A stretch of DNA of 64,000 nt from Ostrea edulis (lineage: Eukaryota). Below are positions 751 through 64,000 of this stretch, piece after piece. The notes beneath the pieces were generated by a model. It was given only the letters and a program-made list of their open reading frames with translations, did not search any database and was not told where the DNA came from. A program made the position numbers and the translations under genes. Location: positions 7,130,001 to 7,194,000 of the forward strand of contig NC_079169.1 of assembly GCF_947568905.1 (NCBI RefSeq), given 5' to 3'. How positions within the stretch are numbered: the first letter of the stretch is position 1; every line of letters starts with the position of its first letter.

Positions 751-866
751 TCAGTGTTATGACCTGATTTTGATTTGGGTCAGTGTTATGACCTGATTCT
801 GATTTGGGTCAGTGCTATGACTTGATTCTGATTTGGGTCAGTGTTATGACTTGATTCTGATTTGGG
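751..866. repeat. 29-bp minisatellite x4 (tcagtgttatgacttgattctgatttggg)
   Basis: Four tandem copies are directly visible. Confidence 0.95.
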
Positions 867-882
867 TGTGTGCTACACTTAC

Positions 883-1011
883 CCAGACAGGCTTGATTCT
901 GATTTGGGTCTTCTCGATATCCCAGGTTACATGCACATCTGTAGGATCCCAGGACATTGGAACAGGACTGACGGGGGGAACACTGTGTACCATTAGCACA
1001 TTCATCCACAT
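883..1011 (-). CDS. Exon: calcium-binding EGF domain ([11 protein letters not shown]...[16 protein letters not shown])
   Basis: Acceptor gacag|AT at 1011, donor G|GTAAGT at 883, 129 nt, phase 1-1. Has the D-V-D-E-C and C-x-N-x-x-G-S-Y-x-C-x-C consensus. Confidence 0.92.
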
Positions 1012-16000: not shown

Positions 16001-17535
16001 TTCCATTGTATTATAGACCGAAAGATCCCGCTACAATTTACCATTTCGTGTAAGTTTTTAATTTGAGAAATTGATTAAAATTTATATTTGAAACAATAAT
16101 TAATTCTATTTTACAGAATGAGGTTTTTGCGTATTACTTTCATCAGAGAAATTATTCTGCACTGCACAAGCGAGTTCAAAGGGGTTAGGAAATAATCAGC
16201 TGACAACATACACATTGTTGTCATTAAATGGACTGGTTCAAATTTTTTATAAAGATAAAGATGTTTCTTTTGAATAAAATATTTTTCATTTTTGATGTTA
16301 AATCATTAAAAATATAACTTATTTAATGTTGACAGCCAAGATTTTGATAATATCAGCAATATTTCAATATTTTGTTATGTAAACAAAAACTGGTCTTTTG
16401 ATGTTTACAAACAAACCAGTGAAATGTGACTTTTTAAAATTTAAAGCATCTTGAGTTTTGCACAGTCAAAAATTTCAACATTTAGATGACACATTTTACC
16501 TAAAGAATGTTTGAAATGTGATAGATACATAATAAAACTTCGATTAATATCCATTTCTTTTGAAAACTTCGTAAACAATAACATACCGCAATCTTTGTTT
16601 ACAAAACAAATAATGATTTTCTAAAATGTGCTTCTGTGGTAATTTATAGCCTTAATTTTTAAAAACCTTTTACCCTTTAAACACATTAGACAGTAGATTT
16701 TGATCATTAAAAGTGAAAAACAAAATAGGGGGAGGGGTCGTGAATCAGTCCCTTTAAACCGGTAATTGACCTGCATGTAATTCAAGCTTGATCTCTTTGA
16801 TTTAAAAATCATATTGTGGGAACACAACACCCCCCCCCCCCCAAAAAAAACCCCACCATATGTGCCAATATTTCTATGTCTGATGAAGTTAGGCAATTCG
16901 AATTCTCTGCACGTCATCGAAGTGTTTGAAAACCATTTATATAGTCTGATTAATTCATATTTAGAGGGATAAAAGAGTAAGATTTTAAATTAATTAGTTG
17001 GTAGCAAATCGAATTCACTATATTCAGTTCATGTTGTCACATTCACCCCGATATTACACTCACTGAAGAAATATTTACTGATGCTGTTGCTGGGAGATAT
17101 ATCAGTTAAATGCATTTATGTTTTGTGCATTAAAGGAGTGTGACAAGTTATAAATCTGGGTTGGATAAAAATTACAGCAGCTTGGTAAACCTCCCCCTCC
17201 CCAACAATCACTCTAACGTGATTTACCTTTCTAAGTAGAAAGAAGTTTAATAACGTATTTTAAAATAATACATGTAATTACAAAGTGATTCGGAACTGGC
17301 CATTATTCAGAACTGGATATAAGACTGTCTTAGTACTCACAAAAATTCTGTTGGATATCACGCAGTCACATGTGATACCTATTGGGTTGTCAACAACAGC
17401 GACCAACAGGTCGTCACCGGATCTGCCTTGTACATCTCCCACTCCAAGTCCAAAGGGAAGCAATTCAGCAGAACCTGAAACGAACAGATGGACTTACACT
17501 ACCTAAACTGTCTTTAAAGATAGTCATTCAAAACT

Positions 17536-17588
<53 letters not shown>

Positions 17589-20500
17589 GATAGAATCAGC
17601 CATATGATAATTATATATACTTGTAGGTGACGTTGTACTTGTTGTTGATAGAGTGCTTGTAATTCCTTCACTTGAAAATGAAGTTTGCTCCGTGCTAATT
17701 GTTGTTTCAAAAAATACGGTTGTGCTAGCATCAATTGTCGTTGTTGTCGAACCTGTTTCTGTTGTGGAGATAGACTGTGTACTCGTGGAAGTGATTTCTG
17801 CAGCAGTTGTGCTACTCACTGTCGACGACCCCATGGTTTCTACTGTTGTGCTAGTTGTTTCTGGAATTGTAGATGTTGGTGTCGCTGCGGATGTAGATGT
17901 ACTGGCTTCACCTGTGACGGCTTCAGTCATAGTCTCTACTGGGTTTGTGGATTGTGCATTTGTTGTGGCAGCATCAGTAGAAGAAGTTGTTGTTGCGCTT
18001 GATTCTGTTGTAAAGCTTGCCTGTGTACTGGTAGAAGTCATTTCTACTGTTGTGGTGCCCTCTGTCGAAGATTCCGTATTTGTAGATGTTGATGTACCTG
18101 CGGATGTAGACATACTGGCTTCAGTTGTGGTGCTTTCAGTTGAACTTTCAACTGCGCTTGTAGATTGTGCAGTTGTTGTGCTAGCATCAGTAGTAGTTGT
18201 CGTTGCGCCTGATTCTGTTGTGGAACTAGACTGTGTACTGCTGGAAGCCATTTCTAGGGTTGTGCTACCGACTGTCGAAAACTCGGTTGTACCTACTTTT
18301 ATAGAATAAAATGGGATCCTATTAGTTATTATTTGATAACAGCATGTATGACATAACGTTCAATTAAAGGATACAAAATATCACTAAGATATTATAAATC
18401 TTTTTGCATTTGTCACTAATACCACACACCCTTTTGATATGAAAGACATCACCTAATACAAGAGGAAAAGACAACTTGCCTTCAGTAGAAGTCGTTGTAT
18501 CAACAATTGCTGATGCAGTTGTGGATCCAGAAGTAGATGTAGTGGGTTCAGATGTGATTGATTCTGATGTAGTCTCTGCTGTGCTTGAAGTATCTGCAGC
18601 TGAGGTGCTAGCGTCAGTACTGGTTGTTGTGCCTGCCTGTGTTGCTGTGCTAGCCTGTGAACTGATGGACGTGGGTTCAGCAGTTGAGATGCTGACTGTC
18701 GACGATTCCGTAGTTTCTACTGTTGTGCTAGCCATCTCTGCAGTTGTTGATGTTGGCGTGTGTGCGGATGTAGATATACCGGTTTCAGTTGTAATGGTTT
18801 CAGTTGTAGACTCAACCGTGCTTGTAGATTCAGGCGATGTTGTGCTACCATCAGTTAGGGTTGTTGTTGTGCCCGATTCTGTTGTGGAGATAAACTGTGT
18901 ACTTGTGGAATCCATTTCTGCAGTTGTGCCGCCCACTGTTGAGGACTCCGTGGTTTCAACTGTTGTGCTAGTTGTGTCTTGAATTGTAGATGTTGGTGCT
19001 GCTGCGGTTGTAGATGTGCTAGCTTCAGGTGTGGTGCCTTCAGTCGTAGTCTCAAGTGCGCTTGTAGATTCAGCAGCGGTTGTGTTAGCATCAGTTGTGG
19101 ATGCTGTTGCACCTGTTTCTGTTGTGGAGATAGACTGTGTACTCGTGGAAGTGATTTCTGCAGCAGTTGTGCTACTCACTGTCGACGACCCCATGGTTTC
19201 TACTGTTGTGCTAGTTGTTTCTGGAATTGTAGATGTTGGTGTCGCTGCGGATGTAGATGTACTGGCTTCACCTGTGACGGCTTCAGTCGTAGTCTCTACT
19301 GGGTTTGTGGATTGTGCATTTGTTGTGGCAGCATCAGTAGAAGAAGTTGTTGTTGCGCTTGATTCTGTTGTAAAGCTTGCCTGTGTACTGGTAGAAGTCA
19401 TTTCTACTGTTGTGGTACCCTCTGTCGAAAATTCCGTATTTGTAGATGTTGATGTACCTGCGGATGTAGACATACTGGCTTCAGTTGTGGTGCTTTCGGG
19501 TGAACTTTCAACTGCGCTTGTAGATTGTGCAGTTGTTGTGCTAGCATCAGTAGTAGTTGTCGTTGCGCCTGATTCTGTTGTGGAACTAGACTGTATACTA
19601 CTGGAAGCCATTTCTAGGGTTGTGCTACCAACTGTCGAAAACTCGGTTGTACCTAATTTTATAGAATAAAATGGGATCCTATTAGTTATTATTTGATAAC
19701 AGCATGTATGACATAACGTTCAATTAAAGGATACAAAATATCACTAAGATATTATAAATCTTTTTGCATTTGTCACTAATACCACACACCCTTTTGATAT
19801 GAAAGACATCACCTAATACAAGAGGAAAAGACAACTTGCCTTCAGTAGAAGTCGTTGTATCAACAATTGCTGATGCAGTTGTGGATCCAGAAGTAGATGT
19901 AGTGGGTTCAGATGTGATTGATTCTGATGTAGTCTCTGCTGTGCTTGAAGTATCTGCAGCTGAGGTGCTAGCGTCAGTACTGGTTGTTGTGCCTGCCTGT
20001 GTTGCTGTGCTAGCCTGTGAACTGATGGACGTGGGTTCAGCAGTTGAGATGCTGACTGTCGACGATTCCGTAGTTTCTACTGTTGTGCTAGCCATCTCTG
20101 CAGTTGTTGATGTTGGCGTGTGTGCGGATGTAGATATACCGGTTTCAGTTGTAATGGTTTCAGTTGTAGACTCAACCGTGCTTGTAGATTCAGGCGATGT
20201 TGTGCTACCATCAGTTAGGGTTGTTGTTGTGCCCGATTCTGTTGTGGAGATAAACTGTGTACTTGTGGAATCCATTTCTGCAGTTGTGCCGCCCACTGTT
20301 GAGGACTCCGTGGTTTCAACTGTTGTGCTAGTTGTGTCTTGAATTGTAGATGTTGGTGCTGCTGCGGTTGTAGATGTGCTAGCTTCAGGTGTGGTGCCTT
20401 CAGTCGTAGTCTCAAGTGCGCTTGTAGATTCAGCAGCGGTTGTGCTAGCATCAGTTGTGGATGCTGTTGCACCTGTTTCTGTTGTGGAGATAGACTGTGT

Positions 20501-23500: not shown

Positions 23501-26500
23501 CCCTCTGTCGAAGATTCCGTATTTGTAGATGTTGATGTACCTGCGGATGTAGACATACTGGCTTCAGTTGTGGTGCTTTCGGGTGAACTTTCAACTGCGC
23601 TTGTAGATTGTGCAGTTGTTGTGCTAGCATCAGTAGTAGTTGTCGTTGCGCCTGATTCTGTTGTGGAACTAGGCTGTGTACTGCTGGAAGCCATTTCTAG
23701 GGTTGTGCTACCGACTGTCGAAAACTCGGTTGTACCTACTTTTATAGAATAAAATGGGATCCTATTAGTTATTATTTGATAACAGCATGTATGACATCAC
23801 TTTCAATTAAAGGATATAAAATATCACTAAGATATTTTAAATCTTTTTGCATTTGTCACTAATACCACACACCCTTTTGATATGAAAGACATCACCTAAT
23901 ACAAGAGGAAAAGACAACTTGCCTTCAGTAGAAGTCGTTGTATCAACAATTGCTGATGCAGTTGTGGATCCAGAAGTAGATGTAGTGGGTTCAGATGTGA
24001 TTGATTCTGATGTAGTCTCTGCTGTGCTTGAAGTATCTGCAGCTGAGGTGCTAGTGTCAGTACTGGTTGTTGTGCCTGCCTGTGTTGCTGTGCTAGCCTG
24101 TGAACTGATGGACGTGGGTTCAGCAGTTGAGATGCTGACTGTCGACGATTCCGTAGTTTCTACTGTTGTGCTAGCCATCTCTGCAGTTGTTGATGTTGGC
24201 GTGTGTGCGGATGTAGATATACCGGTTTCAGTTGTAATGGTTTCAGTTGTAGACTCAACCGTGCTTGTAGATTCAGGCGATGTTGTGCTACCATCAGTTA
24301 GGGTTGTTGTTGTGCCCGATTCTGTTGTGGAGATAAACTGTGTACTTGTGGAATCCATTTCTGCAGTTGTGCCGCCCACTGTTGAGGACTCCGTGGTTTC
24401 AACTGTTGTGCTAGTTGTGTCTTGAATTGTAGATGTTGGTGCTGCTGCGGTTGTAGATGTGCTAGCTTCAGGTGTGGTGCCTTCAGTCGTAGTCTCAAGT
24501 GCGCTTGTAGATTCAGCAGCGGTTGTGCTAGCATCAGTTGTGGATGCTGTTGCACCTGTTTCTGTTGTGGAGATAGACTGTGTACTCGTGGAAGTGATTT
24601 CTGCAGCAGTTGTGCTACTCACTGTCGACGACCCCATGGTTTCTACTGTTGTGCTAGTTGTTTCTGGAATTGTAGATGTTGGTGTCGCTGCGGATGTAGA
24701 TGTACTGGCTTCACCTGTGACGGCTTCAGTCGTAGTCTCTACTGGGTTTGTGGATTGTGCATTTGTTGTGGCAGCATCAGTAGAAGAAGTTGTTGTTGCG
24801 CTTGATTCTGTTGTAAAGCTTGCCTGTGTACTGGTAGAAGTCATTTCTACTGTTGTGGTGCCCTCTGTCGAAGATTCCGTATTTGTAGATGTTGATGTAC
24901 CTGCGGATGTAGACATACTGGCTTCAGTTGTGGTGCTTTCGGGTGAACTTTCAACTGCGCTTGTAGATTGTGCAGTTGTTGTGCTAGCATCAGTAGTAGT
25001 TGTCGTTGCGCCTGATTCTGTTGTGGAACTAGACTGTGTACTGCTGGAAGCCATTTCTAGGGTTGTGCTACCGACTGTCGAAAACTCGGTTGTACCTACT
25101 TTTATAGAATAAAATGGGATCCTATTAGTTATTATTTGATAACAGCATGTATGACATAACGTTCAATTAAAGGATACAAAATATCACTAAGATATTTTAA
25201 ATCTTTTTGCATTTGTCACTAATACCACACACCCTTTTGATATGAAAGACATCACCTAATACAAGGGGAAAAGACAACTTGCCTTCAGTAGAAGTCGTTG
25301 TATCAACAATTGCTGATGCAGTTGTGGATCCAGAAGTAGATGTAGTGGGTTCAGATGTGATTGATTCTGATGTAGTCTCTGCTGTGCTTGAAGTATCTGC
25401 AGCTGAGGTGCTAGCGTCAGTACTGGTTGTTGTTGTGCCTGCCTGTGTTGCTGTGCTAGCCTGTGAACTGATGGACGTGGGTTCAGCAGTTGTGATGCTG
25501 ACTGTTGACGATTCCGTAGTTTCTACTGTTGTGCTAGCCATCTCTGCAGTTGTTGATGTTGGCGTGTGTGCAGATGTAGATATACCGGTTCCAGTTGTAA
25601 TGGTTTCAGTTGTAGACTCAACCGTGCTTGCAGATTCAGGCGATGTTGTGCTACCATCAGTTAGGGTTGTTGTTGTGCCCGATTCTGTTGTGGAGATAAA
25701 CTGTGTACTTGTGGAAGCCATTTCTGCAGTTGTACCGCCCACTGTTGAGGACTCCGTAGTTTCAACTGTTGTGCTAGTTGTGTCTTGAATTGTAGATGTT
25801 GGTGCTGCTGCGGTTGTAGATGTGCTAGCTTCAGGTGTGGTGCCTTCAGTCGTAGTCTCAAGTGCGCTTGTAGATTCAGCAGCGGTTGTGCTAGCATCAG
25901 TTGTGGATGCTGTTGCACCTGTTTCTGTTGTGGAGATAGACTGTGTACTCGTGGAAGTGATTTCTGCAGCAGTTGTGCTACTCACTGTCGACGACCCCAT
26001 GGTTTCTACTGTTGTGCTAGTTGTTTCTGGAATTGTAGATGTTGGTGTCGCTGCGGATGTAGATGTACTGGCTTCACCTGTGACGGCTTCAGTCATAGTC
26101 TCTACTGGGTTTGTGGATTGTGCATTTGTTGTGGCAGCATCAGTAGAAGAAGTTGTTGTTGCGCTTGATTCTGTTGTAAAGCTTGCCTGTGTACTGGTAG
26201 AAGTCATTTCTACTGTTGTGGTGCCCTCTGTCGAAGATTCCGTATTTGTAGATGTTGATGTACCTGCGGATGTAGACATACTGGCTTCAGTTGTGGTGCT
26301 TTCAGTTGAACTTTCAACTGCGCTTGTAGATTGTGCAGTTGTTGTGCTAGCATCAGTAGTAGTTGTCGTTGCGCCTGATTCTGTTGTGGAACTAGACTGT
26401 GTACTGCTGGAAGCCATTTCTAGGGTTGTGCTACCGACTGTCGAAAACTCGGTTGTACCTACTTTTATAGAATAAAATGGGATCCTATTAGTTATTATTT

Positions 26501-50500: not shown

Positions 50501-53500
50501 CCATGGTTTCTACTGTTGTGCTAGTTGTTTCTGGAATTGTAGATGTTGGTGTCGCTGCGGATGTAGATGTACTGGCTTCACCTGTGACGGCTTCAGTCGT
50601 AGTCTCTACTGGGTTTGTGGATTGTGCATTTGTTGTGGCAGCATCAGTAGAAGAAGTTGTTGTTGCGCTTGATTCTGTTGTAAAGCTTGCCTGTGTACTG
50701 GTAGAAGTCATTTCTACTGTTGTGGTGCCCTCTGTCGAAGATTCCGTATTTGTAGATGTTGATGTACCTGCGGATGTAGACATACTGGCTTCAGTTGTGG
50801 TGCTTTCGGGTGAACTTTCAACTGCGCTTGTAGATTGTGCAGTTGTTGTGCTAGCATCAGTAGTAGTTGTCGTTGCGCCTGATTCTGTTGTGGAACTAGA
50901 CTGTGTACTGCTGGAAGCCATTTCTAGGGTTGTGCTACCGACTGTCGAAAACTCGGTTGTACCTACTTTTATAGAATAAAATGGGATCCTATTAGTTATT
51001 ATTTGATAACAGCATGTATGACATAACTTTCAATTAAAGGATACAAAATATCACTAAGATATTTTAAATCTTTTTGCATTTGTCACTAATACCACACACC
51101 CTTTTGATATGAAAGACATCACCTAATACAAGAGGAAAAGACAACTTGCCTTCAGTAGAAGTCGTTGTATCAACAATTGCTGATGCAGTTGTGGATCCAG
51201 AAGTAGATGTAGTGGGTTCAGATGTGATTGATTCTGATGTAGTCTCTGCTGTGCTTGAAGTATCTGCAGCTGAGGTGCTAGCGTCAGTACTGGTTGTTGT
51301 TGTGCCTGCCTGTGTTGCTGTGCTAGCCTGTGAACTGATGGACGTGGGTTCAGCAGTTGTGATGCTGACTGTTGACGATTCCGTAGTTTCTACTGTTGTG
51401 CTAGCCATCTCTGCAGTTGTTGATGTTGGCGTGTGTGCAGATGTAGATATACCGGTTCCAGTTGTAATGGTTTCAGTTGTAGACTCAACCGTGCTTGCAG
51501 ATTCAGGCGATGTTGTGCTACCATCAGTTAGGGTTGTTGTTGTGCCCAATTCTGTTGTGGAGATAAAGTGTGTACTTGTGGAAGCCATTTCTGCAGTTGT
51601 ACCGCCCACTGTTGAGGACTCCGTTGTTTCAACTGTTGTGCTAGTTGTGTCTTGAATTGTAGATGTTGGTGCTGCTGCGGTTGTAGATGTGCTAGCTTCA
51701 GGTGTGGTGCCTTCAGTCGTAGTCTCAAGTGCGCTTGTAGATTCAGCAGCGGTTGTGCTAGCATCAGTTGTGGATGCTGTTGCACCTGTTTCTGTTGTGG
51801 AGATAGACTGTGTACTCGTGGAAGTGATTTCTGCAGCAGTTGTGCTACTCACTGTCGACGACCCCATGGTTTCTACTGTTGTGCTAGTTGTTTCTGGAAT
51901 TGTAGATGTTGGTGTCGCTGCGGATGTAGATGTACTGGCTTCACCTGTGACGGCTTCAGTCGTAGTCTCTACTGGGTTTGTGGATTGTGCATTTGTTGTG
52001 GCAGCATCAGTAGAAGAAGTTGTTGTTGCGCTTGATTCTGTGATAAAGCTTGCCTGTGTACTGGTGGCACTAATTTCTACTGTTGTGGTGCCCTCTGTCG
52101 AAGATTCTGTATTTGTAGATGTTGATGTACCTGCTGATGTAGACATACTGGCTTCAGTAGTGGTGCTTTCAGTTGAACTTTCAACTGCGCTTGTAGATTG
52201 TGCAGGTGTTGTGCTACCATCAGTAGGAGTTGATGATTCGCCTGATTCTGTTGTAGAGCTTGCTTGTGTACTTGTGGAGGTGATTTCTATTGTTTTGCTT
52301 CCTTCTGTCGAAGATTCCGTGTTGTCTGGTGTTGATGTAGTTATTTCTAAAGTTGTAGATGTTGATGTCTCTGCAGATGTAGATGTACTGGCTTCAGTTG
52401 TGGTGCTTTCAGTTGTACTTTCAACTGCACTTGTAGATTCTGTTGCCGTTGTGCTAGGTTCAGTTGTTGCTGCACTTGTTTCTGAATTTGTACTATCCAT
52501 TGTCGAAGACATTGTAGTTTCTGCTGTTGTAGTAGTTGTTTCTGGAATTGTGGAGGATGGTGTCGCTGCGGATGTAGATGTACTGGCTTCAGTTGTGACG
52601 GCTTCAGTCATACTCTCAGTTGTGCTTGTAGATTGTGCAGTTGTTGTGCTACCATCACTAGTAGTTGATGATGCGCCTGATTCTGTTGTAGAGCTTGCCT
52701 GTGTACTTGTGGAGGTGATTTCGATTGTTGTGCTTCCTTCTGTCGAAGATTCCGTGTTGTCTGGTGTTGATGTAGTTATTTCTAAAGTTGTAGATGTTGG
52801 TGTCTCTGTGGATGTAGATGTACTGGCTTCAGTTGTGAAGGTTTCGGTTGTGGTTTCAACTGTGATTGTGGGTTCTGCAACTGTTGTGCTTGAGTCAACA
52901 GTACTTGTTGTGCCTTGCTCTGTTGTTGTGCTAACCAGTGTACTCGTTGAAGTCGGTTGTACTGTTGTGCTTCCGACTGACGACGACTCCGTGGTGTGTA
53001 ATGTTGTGCTAGTTATATCTGCAATTGTAGATGTACTGCTTGTCCCTGTTGTAGTTGCACTGGGCTCAGTTGGGATGGCTTCAGTTGTTGTTTCAGATGT
53101 ACTTGTAGTTTCTGCTACTGTTATTCTGATGGTAGAACTCGCAGGTGTTGTCCCTATGTAAATGTATGCTTTTCATTTTATATTATCATTAGTTAAGTGT
53201 TTCACAAATTATGTTTCTTAAAATCACATTCTGAAAAAAGAAGAGGCTGTGTTTTCTTATTTGGTCTTTGGAAACGTTTGGATTACAGTAGTTACAAGTA
53301 TATTCTCATTCCACACAGTAGTGTGTATATTTCTTTCAGGACGCAAAATCATCCACATCTAGCACGTAAATGTGAATTTCTACGCAGATTACGATTATTT
53401 CACGGTGTACATTATTGTGGGTTATCTAGACAAACTCCTGCTTTGACCAAACGTATTGCATGGATTCAGGAGAACGACTAATTAAGCAATGCTTAGAATC

Positions 53501-56500
53501 TCGAAGAGCGGAACAAACATCGTAATCCCTGTAACCCTCAAAGGAGAAGGTAAAAGAAAAGAATGATGACTGGCAGAAGAAAGAGTTAGTAGTATTAAAA
53601 CGGATATTTAAAAAATTATAACAGAATGTGCCTGATATATCATGATTAAAACACGTCAAGGAGGAAATGCTGAAAATGAAATATATAGGATCACTCTGTA
53701 TCCTATTAGTTATTCCTTCGTAACAGCATTCATATCGTAACTTTGAATAAAAGTTTACAGAATATCACTTATACATTATAAAGGGGTTGCATTTGTCACT
53801 AATACCACACATCTCTTTGTTATCAAACAAACCACATAATAAAATATGAAAAGGCAACTTGCCTTCAGAAGAACTGGTAGTATCAACAATTGTTGATGCA
53901 GTAGTGGATCCAGAAGTAGATGTAGTGGGTTCAGATGTGATTGATTCTGATGTAGTCTCTGCTGTGCTTGAAGTATCTGCAGCTGAGGTGCTAGCGTCAG
54001 TACTGGTTGTTGTTGTGCCTGCCTGTGTTGTTGTGCTAGCCTGTGAACTCGTGGACGTGGGATCAGCAGTTGTGATGCCGGCTGTCGACGATTCCGTAGT
54101 TTCTACTGTTATGCTAGCAATCTCTGCAGTTGTTGATGTTGGCGTGCCTGCGGATGTAGATGTGCTGGCTTCAGGTGTGATGCCTTCAGTGGTAGTTTCA
54201 GATGCGCTTGTAGATTCAGCCAAGGTTGTGCTAGCATCAGTTGTGGCTGTTGTTGCACCTGTTTCTGTTGTGGAGATAGACTGTGCACTACTGGAAGTGA
54301 TTTCTGCAGCAGCTGTGCTACTCACTGTCGACGACCCCATGGTTTCTACTGTTGTGCTAGTTGGAATTGTAGATGTTGGTGTCACTGCGGATGTAGATGC
54401 ACTGGCTTCACCTGTGACGGCTTCAGTCGTAGTCTCAACGGCGCTTGTAGATTGTGCAGTGGTTGTGCTAGCATCAATAGTAGTTGTTGTTGCACTTGCC
54501 TCTGTTGTGGAAATGGTCTCAGTACTGGTGGAAGTTATTTCTGCAGTTGTGCTGCCGACTATTAACGGTTCCGTGGCGTCTAGTGTTGTGGTAGTTATTT
54601 CTGCACTTGTTGATGTTAATGTTACTGAGGACGTAGATGTACTGGCTTCAGTTGTGGTGCTTTCAATTGTACTTTCAACTGCGCTTGTAGATTCAGTCGC
54701 CGTTGTGCTAGGTTCAGTTGTTGTTGTTGCTGCACTTGTTTCTGAAATGGTACTACCCATTGTCGAAGACATTGTAGTTTCTCCTGTTGTAGTAGTTGTT
54801 TCTGGAATTGTGGATGATGGTGTCGCTGCGGATGTAGATGTACTGGCTTCAGTTGCGACGGCTTCAGTTGTGAAGGCTTCAGTCGTAGTCTCAGTTGCGC
54901 TTGTAGATTGTGCAGTTGTTGTGCTACCATCAGTAGTAGTCGAGGATGCGCCTGATTCTGTCGTAGAGCTTGCCTGTGTATTTGTGGAGGTCATTTCCAT
55001 TGTTGTGCTTCCTTCTGTCGAAGATTCGGTGTTGTCTGGTGTTGATGTAGTTATTTCTAAAGTTGTAGGTGTTGATGTCTCTGCAGATGTAGATGTACTG
55101 GCTTCAGTTGTGGTGCTTTCAGTTGTACTTTCAACTGCACTTGTAGATTCAGTCGTCGTTGTGCTAGGTTCAGTTGTTGTTGTTGTTGCTGCACTTGTTT
55201 CTGAAATTGTACTATCCATTGTCGAAGACATTGTAGTTTCTGCTGTTGTAGTAGTTGTTTCTGGAATTGTGGAGGATGGTGTCGCTGCGGATGTAGATGT
55301 ACTGGCTTCAGTTGTGACGGCTTCAGTCATACTCTCAGTTGTGCTTGTAGATTGTGCAGTTGTTGTGGTACCATCACTAGTAGTTGATGATGCGCCTGAT
55401 TCTGTTGTAGAGCTTGCCTGTGTACTTGTGGAGGTGATTTCGATTGTTGTGCTTCCTTCTGTCGAAGATTCCGTGTTGTCTGGTGTTGATGTAGTTATTT
55501 CTAAAGTTGTAGATGTTGGTGTCTCTGTGGATGTAGATGTACTGGCTTCAGTTGTGAAGGTTTCGGTTGTGGTTTCAACTGTGATTGTGGGTTCTGCAAC
55601 TGTTGTGCTTGAGTCAACAGTACTTGTTGTGCCTTGCTCTGTTGTTGTGCTAACCAGTGTACTCGTTGAAGTCGGTTGTACTGTTGTGCTTCCGACTGAC
55701 GACGACTCCGTGGTGTGTAATGTTGTGCTAGTTATATCTGCAATTGTAGATGTACTGCTTGTCCCTGTTGTAGTTGCACTGGGCTCAGTTGGGATGGCTT
55801 CAGTTGTTGTTTCAGATGTACTTGTAGTTTCTGCTACTGTTATGCTGATGGTAGAACTCGCAGGTGTTGTCCCTATGTAAATGTATGCTTTTCATTTTAT
55901 ATTATCATTAGTTAAGTGTTTCACAAATTATGTTTCTTAAAATCACATTCTGAAAAAAGAAGAGGCTGTGTTTTCTTATTTGGTCTTTGGAAACGTTTGG
56001 ATTACAGTAGTTACAAGTATATTCTCATTCCACACAGTAGTGTGTATATTTCTTTCAGGACGCAAAATCATCCACATCTAGCACGTAAATGTGAATTTCT
56101 ACGCAGATTACGATTATTTCACGGTGTACATTATTGTGGGTTATCTAGACAAACTCCTGCTTTGACCAAACGTATTGCATGGATTCAGGAGAACGACTAA
56201 TTAAGCAATGCTTAGAATCTCGAAGAGCGGAACAAACATCGTAATCCCTGTAACCCTCAAAGGAGAAGGTAAAAGAAAAGAATGATGACTGGCAGAAGAA
56301 AGAGTTAGTAGTATTAAAACGGATATTTAAAAAATTATAACAGAATGTGCCTGATATATCATGATTAAAACACGTCAAGGAGGAAATGCTGAAAATGAAA
56401 TATATAGGATCACTCTGTATCCTATTAGTTATTCCTTCGTAACAGCATTCATATCGTAACTTTGAATAAAAGTTTACAGAATATCACTTATACATTATAA

Positions 56501-59500
56501 AGGGGTTGCATTTGTCACTAATACCACACATCTCTTTGTTATCAAACAAACCACATAATAAAATATGAAAAGGCAACTTGCCTTCAGAAGAACTGGTAGT
56601 ATCAACAATTGTTGATGCAGTAGTGGATCCAGAAGTAGATGTAGTGGGTTCAGATGTGATTGATTCTGATGTAGTCTCTGCTGTGCTTGAAGTATCTGCA
56701 GCTGAGGTGCTAGCGTCAGTACTGGTTGTTGTTGTGCCTGCCTGTGTTGTTGTGCTAGCCTGTGAACTCGTGGACGTGGGATCAGCAGTTGTGATGCCGG
56801 CTGTCGACGATTCCGTAGTTTCTACTGTTATGCTAGCAATCTCTGCAGTTGTTGATGTTGGCGTGCCTGCGGATGTAGATGTGCTGGCTTCAGGTGTGAT
56901 GCCTTCAGTGGTAGTTTCAGATGCGCTTGTAGATTCAGCCAAGGTTGTGCTAGCATCAGTTGTGGCTGTTGTTGCACCTGTTTCTGTTGTGGAGATAGAC
57001 TGTGCACTACTGGAAGTGATTTCTGCAGCAGCTGTGCTACTCACTGTCGACGACCCCATGGTTTCTACTGTTGTGCTAGTTGGAATTGTAGATGTTGGTG
57101 TCACTGCGGATGTAGATGCACTGGCTTCACCTGTGACGGCTTCAGTCGTAGTCTCAACGGCGCTTGTAGATTGTGCAGTGGTTGTGCTAGCATCAATAGT
57201 AGTTGTTGTTGCACTTGCCTCTGTTGTGGAAATGGTCTCAGTACTGGTGGAAGTTATTTCTGCAGTTGTGCTGCCGACTATTAACGGTTCCGTGGCGTCT
57301 AGTGTTGTGGTAGTTATTTCTGCACTTGTTGATGTTAATGTTACTGAGGACGTAGATGTACTGGCTTCAGTTGTGGTGCTTTCAATTGTACTTTCAACTG
57401 CGCTTGTAGATTCAGTCGCCGTTGTGCTAGGTTCAGTTGTTGTTGTTGCTGCACTTGTTTCTGAAATGGTACTACCCATTGTCGAAGACATTGTAGTTTC
57501 TCCTGTTGTAGTAGTTGTTTCTGGAATTGTGGATGATGGTGTCGCTGCGGATGTAGATGTACTGGCTTCAGTTGCGACGGCTTCAGTTGTGAAGGCTTCA
57601 GTCGTAGTCTCAGTTGCGCTTGTAGATTGTGCAGTTGTTGTGCTACCATCAGTAGTAGTCGAGGATGCGCCTGATTCTGTCGTAGAGCTTGCCTGTGTAT
57701 TTGTGGAGGTCATTTCCATTGTTGTGCTTCCTTCTGTCGAAGATTCGGTGTTGTCTGGTGTTGATGTAGTTATTTCTAAAGTTGTAGGTGTTGATGTCTC
57801 TGCAGATGTAGATGTACTGGCTTCAGTTGTGGTGCTTTCAGTTGTACTTTCAACTGCACTTGTAGATTCAGTCGTCGTTGTGCTAGGTTCAGTTGTTGTT
57901 GTTGTTGCTGCACTTGTTTCTGAAATTGTACTATCCATTGTCGAAGACATTGTAGTTTCTGCTGTTGTAGTAGTTGTTTCTGGAATTGTGGAGGATGGTG
58001 TCGCTGCGGATGTAGATGTACTGGCTTCAGTTGTGACGGCTTCAGTCATACTCTCAGTTGTGCTTGTAGATTGTGCAGTTGTTGTGGTACCATCACTAGT
58101 AGTTGATGATGCGCCTGATTCTGTTGTAGAGCTTGCCTGTGTACTTGTGGAGGTGATTTCGATTGTTGTGCTTCCTTCTGTCGAAGATTCCGTGTTGTCT
58201 GGTGTTGATGTAGTTATTTCTAAAGTTGTAGATGTTGGTGTCTCTGTGGATGTAGATGTACTGGCTTCAGTTGTGAAGGTTTCGGTTGTGGTTTCAACTG
58301 TGATTGTGGGTTCTGCAACTGTTGTGCTTGAGTCAACAGTACTTGTTGTGCCTTGCTCTGTTGTTGTGCTAACCAGTGTACTCGTTGAAGTCGGTTGTAC
58401 TGTTGTGCTTCCGACTGACGACGACTCCGTGGTGTGTAATGTTGTGCTAGTTATATCTGCAATTGTAGATGTACTGCTTGTCCCTGTTGTAGTTGCACTG
58501 GGCTCAGTTGGGATGGCTTCAGTTGTTGTTTCAGATGTACTTGTAGTTTCTGCTACTGTTATTCTGATGGTAGAACTCGCAGGTGTTGTCCCTATGTAAA
58601 TGTATGCTTTTCATTTTATATTATCATTAGTTAAGTGTTTCACAAATTATGTTTCTTAAAATCACATTCTGAAAAAAGAAGAGGCTGTGTTTTCTTATTT
58701 GGTCTTTGGAAACGTTTGGATTACAGTAGTTACAAGTATATTCTCATTCCACACAGTAGTGTGTATATTTCTTTCAGGACGCAAAATCATCCACATCTAG
58801 CACGTAAATGTGAATTTCTACGCAGATTACGATTATTTCACGGTGTACATTATTGTGGGTTATCTAGACAAACTCCTGCTTTGACCAAACGTATTGCATG
58901 GATTCAGGAGAACGACTAATTAAGCAATGCTTAGAATCTCGAAGAGCGGAACAAACATCGTAATCCCTGTAACCCTCAAAGGAGAAGGTAAAAGAAAAGA
59001 ATGATGACTGGCAGAAGAAAGAGTTAGTAGTATTAAAACGGATATTTAAAAAATTATAACAGAATGTGCCTGATATATCATGATTAAAACACGTCAAGGA
59101 GGAAATGCTGAAAATGAAATATATAGGATCACTCTGTATCCTATTAGTTATTCCTTCGTAACAGCATTCATATCGTAACTTTGAATAAAAGTTTACAGAA
59201 TATCACTTATACATTATAAAGGGGTTGCATTTGTCACTAATACCACACATCTCTTTGTTATCAAACAAACCACATAATAAAATATGAAAAGGCAACTTGC
59301 CTTCAGAAGAACTGGTAGTATCAACAATTGTTGATGCAGTAGTGGATCCAGAAGTAGATGTAGTGGGTTCAGATGTGATTGATTCTGATGTAGTCTCTGC
59401 TGTGCTTGAAGTATCTGCAGCTGAGGTGCTAGCGTCAGTACTGGTTGTTGTTGTGCCTGCCTGTGTTGTTGTGCTAGCCTGTGAACTCGTGGACGTGGGA

Positions 59501-62500
59501 TCAGCAGTTGTGATGCCGGCTGTCGACGATTCCGTAGTTTCTACTGTTATGCTAGCAATCTCTGCAGTTGTTGATGTTGGCGTGCCTGCGGATGTAGATG
59601 TGCTGGCTTCAGGTGTGATGCCTTCAGTGGTAGTTTCAGATGCGCTTGTAGATTCAGCCAAGGTTGTGCTAGCATCAGTTGTGGCTGTTGTTGCACCTGT
59701 TTCTGTTGTGGAGATAGACTGTGCACTACTGGAAGTGATTTCTGCAGCAGCTGTGCTACTCACTGTCGACGACCCCATGGTTTCTACTGTTGTGCTAGTT
59801 GGAATTGTAGATGTTGGTGTCACTGCGGATGTAGATGCACTGGCTTCACCTGTGACGGCTTCAGTCGTAGTCTCAACGGCGCTTGTAGATTGTGCAGTGG
59901 TTGTGCTAGCATCAATAGTAGTTGTTGTTGCACTTGCCTCTGTTGTGGAAATGGTCTCAGTACTGGTGGAAGTTATTTCTGCAGTTGTGCTGCCGACTAT
60001 TAACGGTTCCGTGGCGTCTAGTGTTGTGGTAGTTATTTCTGCACTTGTTGATGTTAATGTTACTGAGGACGTAGATGTACTGGCTTCAGTTGTGGTGCTT
60101 TCAATTGTACTTTCAACTGCGCTTGTAGATTCAGTCGCCGTTGTGCTAGGTTCAGTTGTTGTTGTTGCTGCACTTGTTTCTGAAATGGTACTACCCATTG
60201 TCGAAGACATTGTAGTTTCTCCTGTTGTAGTAGTTGTTTCTGGAATTGTGGATGATGGTGTCGCTGCGGATGTAGATGTACTGGCTTCAGTTGCGACGGC
60301 TTCAGTTGTGAAGGCTTCAGTCGTAGTCTCAGTTGCGCTTGTAGATTGTGCAGTTGTTGTGCTACCATCAGTAGTAGTCGAGGATGCGCCTGATTCTGTC
60401 GTAGAGCTTGCCTGTGTATTTGTGGAGGTCATTTCCATTGTTGTGCTTCCTTCTGTCGAAGATTCGGTGTTGTCTGGTGTTGATGTAGTTATTTCTAAAG
60501 TTGTAGGTGTTGATGTCTCTGCAGATGTAGATGTACTGGCTTCAGTTGTGGTGCTTTCAGTTGTACTTTCAACTGCACTTGTAGATTCAGTCGTCGTTGT
60601 GCTAGGTTCAGTTGTTGTTGTTGTTGTTGTTGCTGCACTTGTTTCTGAAATTGTACTATCCATTGTCGAAGACATTGTAGTTTCTGCTGTTGTAGTAGTT
60701 GTTTCTGGAATTGTGGAGGATGGTGTCGCTGCGGATGTAGATGTACTGGCTTCAGTTGTGACGGCTTCAGTCATACTCTCAGTTGTGCTTGTAGATTGTG
60801 CAGTTGTTGTGGTACCATCACTAGTAGTTGATGATGCGCCTGATTCTGTTGTAGAGCTTGCCTGTGTACTTGTGGAGGTGATTTCGATTGTTGTGCTTCC
60901 TTCTGTCGAAGATTCCGTGTTGTCTGGTGTTGATGTAGTTATTTCTAAAGTTGTAGATGTTGGTGTCTCTGTGGATGTAGATGTACTGGCTTCAGTTGTG
61001 AAGGTTTCGGTTGTGGTTTCAACTGTGATTGTGGGTTCTGCAACTGTTGTGCTTGAGTCAACAGTACTTGTTGTGCCTTGCTCTGTTGTTGTGCTAACCA
61101 GTGTACTCGTTGAAGTCGGTTGTACTGTTGTGCTTCCGACTGACGACGACTCCGTGGTGTGTAATGTTGTGCTAGTTATATCTGCAATTGTAGATGTACT
61201 GCTTGTCCCTGTTGTAGTTGCACTGGGCTCAGTTGGGATGGCTTCAGTTGTTGTTTCAGATGTACTTGTAGTTTCTGCTACTGTTATTCTGATGGTAGAA
61301 CTCGCAGGTGTTGTCCCTATGTAAATGTATGCTTTTCATTTTATATTATCATTAGTTAAGTGTTTCACAAATTATGTTTCTTAAAATCACATTCTGAAAA
61401 AAGAAGAGGCTGTGTTTTCTTATTTGGTCTTTGGAAACGTTTGGATTACAGTAGTTACAAGTATATTCTCATTCCACACAGTAGTGTGTATATTTCTTTC
61501 AGGACGCAAAATCATCCACATCTAGCACGTAAATGTGAATTTCTACGCAGATTACGATTATTTCACGGTGTACATTATTGTGGGTTATCTAGACAAACTC
61601 CTGCTTTGACCAAACGTATTGCATGGATTCAGGAGAACGACTAATTAAGCAATGCTTAGAATCTCGAAGAGCGGAACAAACATCGTAATCCCTGTAACCC
61701 TCAAAGGAGAAGGTAAAAGAAAAGAATGATGACTGGCAGAAGAAAGAGTTAGTAGTATTAAAACGGATATTTAAAAAATTATAACAGAATGTGCCTGATA
61801 TATCATGATTAAAACACGTCAAGGAGGAAATGCTGAAAATGAAATATATAGGATCACTCTGTATCCTATTAGTTATTCCTTCGTAACAGCATTCATATCG
61901 TAACTTTGAATAAAAGTTTACAGAATATCACTTATACATTATAAAGGGGTTGCATTTGTCACTAATACCACACATCTCTTTGTTATCAAACAAACCACAT
62001 AATAAAATATGAAAAGGCAACTTGCCTTCAGAAGAACTGGTAGTATCAACAATTGTTGATGCAGTAGTGGATCCAGAAGTAGATGTAGTGGGTTCAGATG
62101 TGATTGATTCTGATGTAGTCTCTGCTGTGCTTGAAGTATCTGCAGCTGAGGTGCTAGCGTCAGTACTGGTTGTTGTTGTGCCTGCCTGTGTTGTTGTGCT
62201 AGCCTGTGAACTCGTGGACGTGGGATCAGCAGTTGTGATGCCGGCTGTCGACGATTCCGTAGTTTCTACTGTTATGCTAGCAATCTCTGCAGTTGTTGAT
62301 GTTGGCGTGCCTGCGGATGTAGATGTGCTGGCTTCAGGTGTGATGCCTTCAGTGGTAGTTTCAGATGCGCTTGTAGATTCAGCCAAGGTTGTGCTAGCAT
62401 CAGTTGTGGCTGTTGTTGCACCTGTTTCTGTTGTGGAGATAGACTGTGCACTACTGGAAGTGATTTCTGCAGCAGCTGTGCTACTCACTGTCGACGACCC

Positions 62501-64000
62501 CATGGTTTCTACTGTTGTGCTAGTTGGAATTGTAGATGTTGGTGTCACTGCGGATGTAGATGCACTGGCTTCACCTGTGACGGCTTCAGTCGTAGTCTCA
62601 ACGGCGCTTGTAGATTGTGCAGTGGTTGTGCTAGCATCAATAGTAGTTGTTGTTGCACTTGCCTCTGTTGTGGAAATGGTCTCAGTACTGGTGGAAGTTA
62701 TTTCTGCAGTTGTGCTGCCGACTATTAACGGTTCCGTGGCGTCTAGTGTTGTGGTAGTTATTTCTGCACTTGTTGATGTTAATGTTACTGAGGACGTAGA
62801 TGTACTGGCTTCAGTTGTGGTGCTTTCAATTGTACTTTCAACTGCGCTTGTAGATTCAGTCGCCGTTGTGCTAGGTTCAGTTGTTGTTGTTGCTGCACTT
62901 GTTTCTGAAATGGTACTACCCATTGTCGAAGACATTGTAGTTTCTCCTGTTGTAGTAGTTGTTTCTGGAATTGTGGATGATGGTGTCGCTGCGGATGTAG
63001 ATGTACTGGCTTCAGTTGCGACGGCTTCAGTTGTGAAGGCTTCAGTCGTAGTCTCAGTTGCGCTTGTAGATTGTGCAGTTGTTGTGCTACCATCAGTAGT
63101 AGTCGAGGATGCGCCTGATTCTGTCGTAGAGCTTGCCTGTGTATTTGTGGAGGTCATTTCCATTGTTGTGCTTCCTTCTGTCGAAGATTCGGTGTTGTCT
63201 GGTGTTGATGTAGTTATTTCTAAAGTTGTAGGTGTTGATGTCTCTGCAGATGTAGATGTACTGGCTTCAGTTGTGGTGCTTTCAGTTGTACTTTCAACTG
63301 CACTTGTAGATTCAGTCGTCGTTGTGCTAGGTTCAGTTGTTGTTGTTGCTGCACTTGTTTCTGAAATTGTACTACCCATTGTCGAAGACATTGTAGTTTC
63401 TCCTGTTGTAGTAGTTGTTTCTGGAATTGTGGATGATGGTGTCGCTGCGGATGTAGATGTACTGGCTTCAGTTGCAACGGCTTCAGTTGTGAAGGCTTCA
63501 GTCGTAGTCTCAGTTGCGCTTGTAGATTGTGCAGTTGTTGTGCTACCATCAGTAGTAGTCGATGATGCGCCTGATTCTGTTGTAGAGCTTGCCTGTGTAC
63601 TTGTAGAGTTGATTTGTATTGTTGTGCTTCCTTCTGTCGAAGATTCCGTGTTGTCTGGTGTTGATGTAGTTATTTCTAAAGTTGTAGATGTTGATGTCCC
63701 TGCAGATGTAGATGTACTGGCTTCAGTTGTGGTGCTTTCAGTTGTACTTTCAACTGCACTTGTAGATTCAGTTGCCGTTGTGCTAGGTTCAGTTGTTGCT
63801 GCACTTGTTTCTGAAATTGTACTATCCATTGTCGAAGACATTGTAGTTTCTGCTGTTGTAGTAGTTGTTTCTGGAATTGTGGAGGATGGTGTCGCTGCGG
63901 ATGTAGATGTACTGGCTTCAGTTGTGACGGCTTCAGTCATACTCTCAGTTGTGCTTGTAGATTGTGCAGTTGTTGTGGTACCATCACTAGTAGTTGATGA
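883..64000 (-). CDS. Giant MUC4-like mucin gene (multi-exon, partial at both window edges): S/T-rich tandem-exon domain followed by NIDO, AMOP, VWD and EGF domains
   Basis: 43 inferred exons join in one open frame with matching intron phases. Domain order NIDO-AMOP-GDPH-VWD-EGF downstream of an S/T domain matches the MUC4 architecture (established knowledge). No start or stop of the spliced ORF lies in the window. Confidence 0.9.
1352..1516 (-). CDS. Exon: EGF-like domain ([15 protein letters not shown]...[10 protein letters not shown])
   Basis: Acceptor ttttag|GT at 1516, donor G|GTAGGT at 1352, 165 nt, phase 1-1, EGF-type Cys spacing. Confidence 0.9.
2068..2234 (-). CDS. Exon: end of linker plus first EGF-like domain (FWAVDVQG...[11 protein letters not shown]...CLCEIGWEG)
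   Basis: Acceptor ctgtag|T at 2234, donor G|GTAGGA at 2068, 167 nt, phase 2-1, which fits both neighbouring exons. Confidence 0.88.
2235..3208. repeat. Intronic minisatellite of 51-bp and 45-bp variant units, about 20 copies
   Basis: Units tacaacattagatatattgtacacaaacaacagtacatattgtacaaacaa (51) and ...ctgtacatactgtaa (45). Confidence 0.95.
3713..3908 (-). CDS. Exon: beta-rich linker after VWD (ANTPPSIV...AVDSDGD...)
   Basis: Acceptor ttgtag|CT at 3908, donor AG|GTACAC at 3713, 196 nt, phase 1-2. Confidence 0.82.
4000..4232. repeat. 58-bp minisatellite x4
   Basis: The unit containing gtcactgcaggtcacctctagacttatcctaag shifts 2 nt per 60-nt line. Confidence 0.93.
4880..5125 (-). CDS. Exon: Cys-containing segment after VWD ([10 protein letters not shown]...[15 protein letters not shown])
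   Basis: Acceptor ctacag|GG at 5125, donor G|GTATAG at 4880, 246 nt, phase 1-1. Splicing restores FGESW. The C...C-L-F-D motif is typical of MUC4/SUSD2-like proteins. Confidence 0.88.
6144..6347 (-). CDS. Exon: VWD C-terminal part ([20 protein letters not shown]...FGES)
   Basis: Acceptor tttcag|AA at 6347, donor T|GTAAGT at 6144, 204 nt, phase 1-1. GLLG-N-x-NG-D-x-x-DD is the VWD signature. Confidence 0.92.
6644..6781 (-). CDS. Exon: VWD middle part ([14 protein letters not shown]...VGVLFSSG)
   Basis: Acceptor cgacag|GG at 6781 (weak pyrimidine tract), donor G|GTTGGA at 6644, 138 nt, phase 1-1. Confidence 0.75.
6771..7285. repeat. Composite minisatellite built from about 18-bp ttgtcaata/attatcc subunits
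   Basis: Recurrent attatccttgtcaata and ccattatttctgtcagtgaa blocks. Confidence 0.9.
7355..7606 (-). CDS. Exon: VWD N-terminus with GDPH motif ([23 protein letters not shown])
   Basis: Acceptor ccacag|GA at 7606, donor G|GTATGT at 7355, 252 nt, phase 1-1. Shows the GDPH-x-x-T-x-DG-x-x-Y-T-x-NG-x-GE consensus; GDPH is at 7584-7595. Confidence 0.95.
7769..8731. mobile_element. 963-bp Tc1/mariner(pogo)-type non-autonomous element (MITE) with TA target duplication
   Basis: 23-bp TIRs CAGTAAAATATCT(G/C)TATCTCGAA with one mismatch, TA on both sides (7767-7768, 8732-8733), repeated subterminal tatctcgaa motifs, no transposase ORF. Confidence 0.85.
8760..9006. mobile_element. About 247-bp degenerate TA-flanked MITE
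   Basis: Left end ta|cagtttaagtggctataattttagcgag; right end (reverse complement) ta|cagtataagcagaatttttagcaag. A similar end fragment lies near 1237-1262. Confidence 0.55.
9296..10162. repeat. 45-59-bp minisatellite, about 16 copies (aaatgttgagttctcatcactcacagaatcatttgtctgtggtaaatgtatata)
   Basis: Directly visible; length varies through (ta)n and loss of ggtaaatgta. Confidence 0.95.
10422..10641 (-). CDS. Exon: AMOP C-terminal half (KCCY...PYTWCC...[19 protein letters not shown])
   Basis: Acceptor tttcag|AAA at 10641, donor G|GTATGA at 10422, 220 nt, phase 0-1. Has AMOP CCY / WCC / C-x-x-Y-x-PP motifs. Confidence 0.92.
11454..11698 (-). CDS. Exon: end of NIDO and AMOP N-terminal half (GMWVYKLD...RCHTW...PCPC...DPRF)
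   Basis: Acceptor taaaag|GA at 11698, donor AGG|GTAAGA at 11454, 245 nt, phase 1-0. Confidence 0.9.
11706..12045. repeat. About 41-bp minisatellite x8 (ttgttagctgtaaatgtttacaaaatgccaattaccaacaa)
   Basis: Directly visible tandem copies. Confidence 0.93.
12362..12610. repeat. 39/42-bp minisatellite x6 (aaatcttaagaagtcagtcatttatcagtgaatgattcagtt)
   Basis: Directly visible; the units differ by an aag indel. Confidence 0.93.
12829..13027 (-). CDS. Exon: NIDO core ([21 protein letters not shown]...)
   Basis: Acceptor tttcag|AAT at 13027, donor G|GTACTG at 12829, 199 nt, phase 0-1. Matches the NIDO N-T-F-Q-x-x-x-x-x-DG motif. Confidence 0.88.
13099..13320. repeat. About 46-bp minisatellite x5 (gaggccaacagagaactccatggtcagccatcaaacccacagggtc)
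   Basis: Directly visible tandem copies. Confidence 0.9.
13421..14526. mobile_element. Interspersed (SINE-like) repeat split by an approximately 821-bp hAT-like non-autonomous insertion (13660-14480)
   Basis: The GC-richer host segment 13421-13659 resumes at 14481. The insert is flanked by gcaaggggta / gcgaggggta, carries inverted subterminal gtggtcaatactggt (13696-13710 vs 14395-14409) and ends in ...cccaaccctg. The host resembles an abundant oyster repeat as recalled, not searched. Confidence 0.6.
14549..14878 (-). CDS. Exon: NIDO N-terminal region (IYTNGYITL...[10 protein letters not shown]...LVVTWENV)
   Basis: Acceptor ttccag|ATT at 14878, donor CAG|GTAATA at 14549, 330 nt, phase 0-0. 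APFWxD and VxTWxxV motifs are present. Confidence 0.93.
17341..17474 (-). CDS. Exon: first globular-region exon after the mucin domain ([13 protein letters not shown]...SNRIF)
   Basis: Acceptor tttcag|GT at 17474, donor TTT|GTGAGT at 17341, 134 nt, phase 1-0. The L-x-P-F-G-x-x-x-G-D motif precedes NIDO in MUC4-like proteins. Confidence 0.88.
17539..17584. repeat. (AG)23 microsatellite in the 146-bp intron between the mucin domain and the globular region
   Basis: Directly visible. Confidence 0.98.
17621..18292 (-). CDS. Terminal S/T-rich exon: truncated type A cassette with a unique 3' end and canonical GT donor
   Basis: 672 nt, phase 1-1. Acceptor aagtag|GT at 18292, donor A|GTATAT at 17621. 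Confidence 0.85.
18293..52284. repeat. Tandem array of about 25 copies of the 1360/1363-bp exon+intron unit (type A)
   Basis: ORF-track starts recur at exact 1360 or 1363 spacing from 19611 to 50921. Introns and exons are nearly identical between copies. Confidence 0.98.
18480..50962 (-). CDS. 24 type A S/T-rich exons (1173 or 1176 nt; 391/392 aa) separated by 187-bp introns
   Basis: Exons: 18480-19652, 19840-21012, 21200-22375, 22563-23735, 23923-25095, 25283-26458, 26646-27818, 28006-29178, 29366-30541, 30729-31901, 32089-33261, 33449-34624, 34812-35984, 36172-37347, 37535-38707, 38895-40070, 40258-41433, 41621-42793, 42981-44153, 44341-45516, 45704-46876, 47064-48239, 48427-49599, 49787-50962. 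All are open, phase 1-1, with tag|GT acceptors and GAAG|GCAAGT donors. 14 short plus 10 long = 28182 nt. Confidence 0.85.
51150..53153 (-). CDS. Hybrid S/T-rich exon (type B 5' half, type A 3' half), 2004 nt
   Basis: B-type acceptor tacatag|GG at 53153, A-type donor context G|GCAAGTTGTC at 51150, phase 1-1, open frame. Confidence 0.85.
52285..64000. repeat. Tandem array of about 2719-2725-bp exon+intron units (type B), running off the window edge
   Basis: Intronic ORFs recur at 53197, 55916, 58635 and 61360 (spacing 2719, 2719, 2725). Confidence 0.97.
53863..64000 (-). CDS. Type B S/T-rich exons: 53863-55872, 56582-58591, 59301-61316 and 62026 to beyond 64000, separated by 709-bp introns
   Basis: 2010, 2010, 2016 and over 1975 nt, open frames, acceptors tacatag|GG, donors GAAG|GCAAGT, phase 1-1. 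Confidence 0.85.

Follow-up and report, generated by a model that had tools for sequence, protein, structure and literature searches.

The stalk of an oyster MUC4-type membrane mucin is probably encoded by tandem cassettes of exon and intron instead of by one giant exon, a reading to which we assign a probability of roughly 70%. The array of cassettes lies on the minus strand of a 64,000-nucleotide (nt) stretch of Ostrea edulis NC_079169.1, hereafter the window, in which it occupies 64000-17621 and adjoins the exons of a gene of mucin-4 type. Each cassette would consist of a phase-1/phase-1 exon, built of diverged sub-repeats ~80 residues long, with a short intron behind it, and splicing would join ...S-T-E to G-T-T-E... 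via a split Gly codon.

Near 17.6 kb the sequence of the window takes on a different character: up to 64000, its plus strand is from this point rich in G and T, with a GC content of 0.40-0.46 and a GC skew of about +0.2, and Tandem Repeats Finder reveals a 240-nt period nested within longer periods across the array region. Stop-free segments on the minus strand are spaced 1360 or 1363 nt apart, and further on 2719-2725 nt apart, with neighbouring segments lying in differing frames. An earlier reading of this DNA (the original prediction) had named two junction motifs and proposed about 38.9 kb of open coding sequence; anchoring our parse on both motifs resolved 64000-17621 (-) into 30 open Ser/Thr-rich exons, made up of four B exons (one of them cut), one B/A hybrid, 24 A exons and one terminal exon, which are the very counts obtained before. 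The exons amount to 38,197 + 672 = 38,869 nt, or about 12,950 codons. All complete exons have a length that is a multiple of 3 and are of phase 1-1, and the array exons contain no in-frame stops.

Between these exons lie 29 cassette introns of two lengths, 709 nt in four cases and 187 nt in the other 25. Every one of them has a length of 1 mod 3 and carries in-frame stops, so that the reading frame is kept only by intron removal, which splits a Gly codon in phase 1 at every cassette junction. The GC content of the cassette introns is 28-33%, as against 46-47% for the exons. The encoded protein is composed of 36-38% T, 21-22% S, 10% A, 10% E and 3% P; Ser and Thr together make up 58-59% of the stalk, which is arranged in diverged sub-repeats of about 80 residues and is predicted to be heavily O-glycosylated.

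Read along the minus strand, the array enters the window within a B-type mucin exon (64000-62026; 1975 nt seen) whose frame is open to the edge and which ends ...GAAG before GCAAGT; the array probably continues past 64000. Three complete B cassettes with flanking introns follow at 53154..62025, with donor AAG/GCAAGT and acceptor CATAG/GG (the slash marks the exon-intron border). Their exons lie at 61316-59301, 58591-56582 and 55872-53863 (2016, 2010 and 2010 nt), and the four 709-nt introns at 62025-61317, 59300-58592, 56581-55873 and 53862-53154. The 2004-nt hybrid exon (53153-51150) is of B type over its first ~900 nt (99-100%) and of A type over the remainder, and by this composition marks the junction between the B and A sub-arrays. 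The region 18293..51149 comprises the 187-nt intron behind the hybrid exon and the 24 A cassettes, each with a 187-nt intron, the A exons (1173 or 1176 nt) running from 50962 to 18480. Last comes the 672-nt terminal mucin exon (18292-17621), which starts like an A exon, continues into a unique Ser/Thr-rich tail and ends at a putative phase-1 donor, CAA/GTATAT. The 146-nt intron from the mucin domain to the first NIDO exon (17475..17620) contains a (CT)n microsatellite of ~25 units at 17517-17570.

The array adjoins 13 exons that are colinear with residues 637-1517 of Magallana gigas mucin-4 (P0080, a 2609-residue protein used as the query), with 55-71% identity by tblastn, and the terminal mucin exon joins the NIDO-starting exon in phase 1 over the 146-nt intron. 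This continuity points to a MUC4-type membrane mucin: the gene unites a long Ser/Thr-rich repeat domain, a NIDO domain after the repeats, a VWD domain with GDPH, a C8-3 module and EGF_CA domains. The original prediction had spoken of a very large mucin, and the 13 colinear exons and their Pfam domains now specify the MUC4 type; Pfam searches of the A and B exon proteins themselves revealed no family. A protein-cluster search with the second NIDO exon returned, at 73% identity over that exon, a cluster containing M. gigas "mucin-4" isoforms, an M. gigas "Fibrillin-1" entry and Crassostrea angulata LOC128172377. The M. gigas orthologue has Pfam matches to NIDO (PF06119, 2.3e-27), weakly to AMOP, and to VWD (1.7e-12), C8-3_MUC4, many EGFs and SEA, and its C-terminus, read by eye, shows a hydrophobic span and then an Arg-rich tail. 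The O. edulis gene appears to be an orthologue or very close paralogue of both LOC128172377 of C. angulata and mucin-4 of M. gigas.

In C. angulata, the mucin domain preceding NIDO is a single uninterrupted frame of at least 10,086 nt, running off the stretch examined, and no donor-like motif AGGCAAGT or AGGTAAGT occurs inside this 10,086-nt frame. The contrast with single-exon mucin domains, which had been drawn before, can be seen directly in this Crassostrea orthologue. Its sub-repeat measures ~76-77 residues and is weakly alignable to the 80-residue unit (hhalign probability 72%, for sequences of low complexity); a protein-collection search with the C. angulata mucin frame gave no match. 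The giant exon of C. angulata ends TTAG/gtactt, in phase 1 and with a split Gly, and the small Ser/Thr exon behind it starts T-T-E-S-S-T. At the O. edulis cassette junction, too, a Gly codon is split in phase 1, and T-T-E-F-S-T opens the exon that follows. We infer that the cassette intron descends from a single conserved post-repeat intron. Comparison of the cassette introns with the C. angulata post-repeat intron produced chance-level matches only and no alignable homology, so the case for descent is one of position, phase and flanking residues only.

In the C. angulata annotation (GCA_025612915.2, CM046776.1, locus stretch 1-10087), the one mucin frame has been given two gene models: the first, of 4609 residues, stops at 9773, and the second, of 2052 residues, begins at 10001 within the same open frame. 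With a single frame cut into two models, the oyster MUC4-like gene is probably under-annotated.

The donor AAG/GCAAGT is present in 29/29 cassette introns, and all of these introns end in TAG. Given a GC donor with otherwise consensus positions and an AG acceptor, all 29 have the sequence of U2-type GC-AG introns. Both junction motifs of the original prediction gave a clean parse, but the intron start is GC, not GT, everywhere. The downstream introns of the same gene, from a homology-guided parse, have GT donors in 12/12 cases, all being GT-AG with strong pyrimidine tracts. Splicing from the GC donor would join GAAG to GTACAACC or GGACAACA, and the resulting predicted junction, S-T-E-G-T-T, has its counterpart within exons, where the motif S-(S/T)-T-E-G-(T/S)-T also stands uninterrupted at sub-repeat borders. 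A CTAAT branch-site-like motif lies ~30-37 nt ahead of the cassette acceptors. From their sequence, the cassette introns are predicted to be spliced from the GC donor to these acceptors. In the A cassettes the acceptor is a tandem AAG-TAG of NAGNAG type (for example 25096-25105), whose upstream AG is frame-compatible and would add one codon.

As to which donor serves the A cassettes, we lean towards the GC site. Two observations count against it: a listing of all donor/acceptor pairs contains many that are frame-compatible, the intron being open over its first ~90 nt, and frame alone therefore picks no unique pair; and the A cassettes offer an in-frame GT donor 27 nt downstream (TTAG/GTGATG). 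A possible, though clearly less probable, alternative is that the cassette architecture is the same and the A cassettes use this second site, a canonical GT that all 25 A-type introns carry in phase 1 and in frame. On that reading the A exons would each gain nine residues, most of them hydrophobic (K-L-S-F-P-L-V-L and the split Gly), the GC site would serve as an alternative donor at best, and the exon end ...V-L-G/gt would resemble the end ...V-I-L-G/gt of the C. angulata giant exon. However, the GT donor is destroyed in the four B introns (TTAT/GTGGTT), whilst the GC site is intact in 29/29. The extra 27 nt are T-rich and intron-like, and they interrupt the Ser/Thr repeat pattern. The GC junction recreates the motif seen within exons. 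Position +2 apart, moreover, the GC site is closer to the donor consensus than the GT donor is.

The copies of the cassette are strongly homogenised. A exons differ from one another by a mean of 0.60% (26 variable columns, 13 distinct sequences), a one-codon indel being the only indel among them, and A introns by a mean of 1.08% (8/187 columns variable, 9 distinct sequences); the B introns (n = 4) are 100% identical and the B units 99.74-99.96% identical. That the repeated unit includes the intron, and that introns are homogenised like exons, is in agreement with what had been proposed for this locus: the tandem unit, in 29 cassettes, is an exon plus a near-identical intron, as in other genes with iterated homogenised introns. 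The 1176- and 1173-nt A exons alternate in blocks, and higher-order blocks are formed by a 2-cassette unit (2723 nt) present three times and a 3-cassette unit (4083 nt) present three times. Copy identities of 99-100% together with 2- and 3-cassette blocks are the pattern expected of recent unequal crossover, the process to which the expansion had been attributed.

The same homogeneity raises the question of whether the cassettes are real and their copy number in the assembly wrong, either inflated or collapsed, an explanation compatible with the cassette architecture and one that we regard as unlikely. It draws on a 33-kb array that is 99.4% identical and holds repeated 2- and 3-cassette blocks and exact repeats of up to 5117 bp, the longest in the array. 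Set against this are the 13 distinct A exons, the 9 distinct introns, the structured pattern of variants and the lack of N runs. Typical long accurate reads are expected to be longer than 5.1 kb, so reads should in principle be anchorable even across the longest exact repeat, which weighs against a copy-number error; assembly across the array is plausible.

Since the A copies and the B copies are young and their open frames are not independent evidence, the informative comparison is that of A with B. The A exon aligns to the 3'-terminal 1173 nt of its B counterpart with 80% identity and seven indels, 7/7 of which are multiples of 3, whilst the A and B introns are 77% identical over their first 164 nt, including a 1-nt indel. 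Frame has thus been kept in the exons and not in the introns, and the homology between A and B introns indicates that the intron predates the A/B split.

Beyond this homologous stretch, the 3' part of the B intron (~545 nt, for example within 53154-53862) has no counterpart in the A cassettes or elsewhere in the window; it may be an insertion or a former exon that has degenerated. Some 198 nt into the B intron, right after the A-homologous stretch, stands a strong acceptor-like site (...TTTCATTTTCAG), which may be a remnant of the end of an ancestral short intron. A 24-nt block, GTGTGGTATTAGTGACAAATGC, is identical in A and B introns against the 77% background, by estimate not clearly beyond chance; examples of these B-intron features are found at 56385-56420 and 56508-56530. 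To other parts of the window the cassette introns show chance-level matches only, with no sign of a transposon origin.

The most far-reaching objection is that the array is not productively spliced, and that a short insertion in a mucin repeat was co-amplified with it, leaving a decaying or truncated segment or a coding-derived satellite and not a 13,000-residue protein. We consider this very unlikely, whilst acknowledging that a series of observations favours it or weighs against the cassette explanation. The cassette donors are non-canonical GC sites, and the acceptors (...ATAAAAGTAG/ and ...CATTTACATAG/) are weak, with poorer pyrimidine tracts than those of the gene's other introns. Protein-collection searches were blank: the A exon found no match from the array locus, and its last 100 residues, used as a query for junction-spanning fragments, found none either. 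No metagenome contig matched the spliced junction exactly, but the exon-internal control found nothing either, which makes this negative uninformative. The array had no tblastn match to the M. gigas protein, the repeats not being conserved between genera, and the match to a profile of the Crassostrea repeats was weak and between low-complexity sequences. The copies are, in addition, so young that their open frames give no independent sign of constraint, and long open frames also occur on the opposite strand. What this alternative accounts for poorly is that A and B, though ~20% diverged, are both open and multiples of 3, differ by frame-preserving indels only (7/7) and carry the same donor sequence. 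Two different acceptors, at 187 nt and 709 nt, each restore phase 1, and the array leads, on the same strand and in phase, into an intact NIDO-VWD-EGF gene.

A non-coding satellite was rejected in view of the frame-preserving indels (7/7 between A and B, and one codon among the A exons), and so was coding on the plus strand, its long open frames coming without splice logic or a link to the downstream gene.

Under the cassette explanation, the array could have arisen in four steps. An ancestral intron would have stood directly behind the giant repeat exon, where it is still single in Crassostrea. It would then have been caught in a tandem duplication that arose by unequal exchange of the giant exon with the related Ser/Thr-rich exon that follows. 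The resulting cassette would have diverged into the B and A forms, now ~20% apart, and each form would very recently have been amplified and homogenised, one to three cassettes at a time, through gene conversion or unequal crossover.

A more doubtful extension of this model is that 29 frame-symmetric cassettes, each with a weak GC donor and a weak acceptor, act as a built-in diversifier of the length and form of the stalk. If so, skipping any subset of cassettes would keep the frame and yield stalks of graded length, and retaining one intron would add a Cys-containing tail of 28-32 residues and then a stop, giving secreted, anchorless mucin fragments.

The 13 exons downstream of the array are all on the minus strand. 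Three NIDO exons (17474-17341, 14878-14549 and 13027-12829), separated by GT-AG introns, correspond to P0080 residues 637-858 (Pfam NIDO 5e-14 and 2.9e-05). They are followed by two Cys-rich AMOP-like exons (11698-11454 and 10641-10422) with 63-64% identity to P0080 858-1028; AMOP (PF03782) reaches an E-value of 0.0044 in the orthologue, below cut-off strength, and the two exon pieces from the window have no Pfam match. The VWD exons lie at 7606-7355, which carries the GDPH motif, 6781-6644 and 6347-6144; their Pfam VWD scores (1.7e-3 and 5.7e-4) are sub-threshold because the domain is split over exons. A C8-3_MUC4 exon (5125-4880; Pfam 2.2e-11) comes next, then a further exon at 3908-3713, colinear with P0080 (residues 1300-1517, which include the EGF exons), and EGF-like exons at 2234-2062, 1501-1352 and 1011-about 884 (Pfam EGF_CA 3.1e-10). 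The gene runs past window position 1, and its remainder lies outside the window.

Minisatellites, with repeat periods from 29 to 243 nt and as many as 16 copies, are found in 6/12 introns downstream of the array and in the sequence after the last mapped exon (750-867, 2244-3195, 4000-4233, 6874-7284, 9296-10163, 11705-12039, 12361-12627 and 13093-13318). The locus seems prone to tandem amplification.

In domain content the gene is like vertebrate MUC4 and oyster mucin-4 (M. gigas XP_019918870; C. angulata LOC128172377), which share Ser/Thr repeats, NIDO, an AMOP-like region, VWD with GDPH, C8-3_MUC4 and EGF; the oyster mucin-4 orthologue continues into SEA domains and a membrane anchor. In human mucins the repeats as a rule occupy a single large exon (PMC13345508). 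Compared with MUC4 and mucin-4, the O. edulis repeat domain is interrupted every 1.17-2.0 kb by an iterated intron. A MUC4-family repeat domain would here have grown by the copying of a splice unit, and the intronless relative allows a direct comparison. Split or truncated gene models are to be expected at loci of this kind, and oyster mucin catalogues and expression studies may under-count such genes.

Arrays of exons with homogenised introns are known from other systems, and the novelty implied by the original prediction was in this respect overstated. In SmPoMuc of Schistosoma mansoni, mucin repeats lie in tandem genomic units of exon plus introns, up to ~20 of them, whose intronic parts are over 93-94% identical, which its authors read as concerted evolution; SmPoMuc transcripts vary in repeat number (PMC2576457). 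SmPoMuc belongs to a different, parasite-specific multigene family for which no GC donors are reported, and its unit is a 27-bp exon in ~1 kb that is mostly intron, whereas in O. edulis introns of 187 or 709 nt separate exons of 1.17-2.0 kb. The genomic repeats of SmPoMuc are separated by GA-type microsatellites, and O. edulis likewise has a (CT)n tract between the mucin and NIDO exons.

The repeat units of the spider flagelliform spidroin and of Argiope MaSp2 are bounded by near-identical small introns (mean identity 97.6% in MaSp2); the MaSp2 iterated introns arose within a genus whose relatives have intronless genes, and iterated introns in spiders have been proposed to guide unequal crossover and homogenisation (PMC9779670). 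There the product is silk, from an unrelated family, and iterated introns with GC donors throughout are a feature of O. edulis. Judging from the junction comparison, the O. edulis intron would also differ in deriving from a pre-existing flanking intron instead of being new. The locus could therefore serve as a natural case of how iterated introns arise, apparently by amplification of a flanking intron and not by new insertion, and it can be used to probe whether unequal crossover is guided by iterated introns, an idea put forward for the spider silk genes.

GC donors make up <1% of donors, show near-perfect consensus at the other donor positions when used, and are associated with regulated alternative splicing (PMC2490688). 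Whilst U2-type GC-AG introns are scattered through genomes, the O. edulis array has, by sequence, 29/29 of them consecutively, a run that exists because the cassette was amplified; whether such a run makes protein length tunable by splicing is a further question that the locus can probe. What O. edulis adds to the systems already known is a case from the MUC4 family in which the exons are very large, the donors form a uniform GC run and an intronless orthologue is at hand for comparison.

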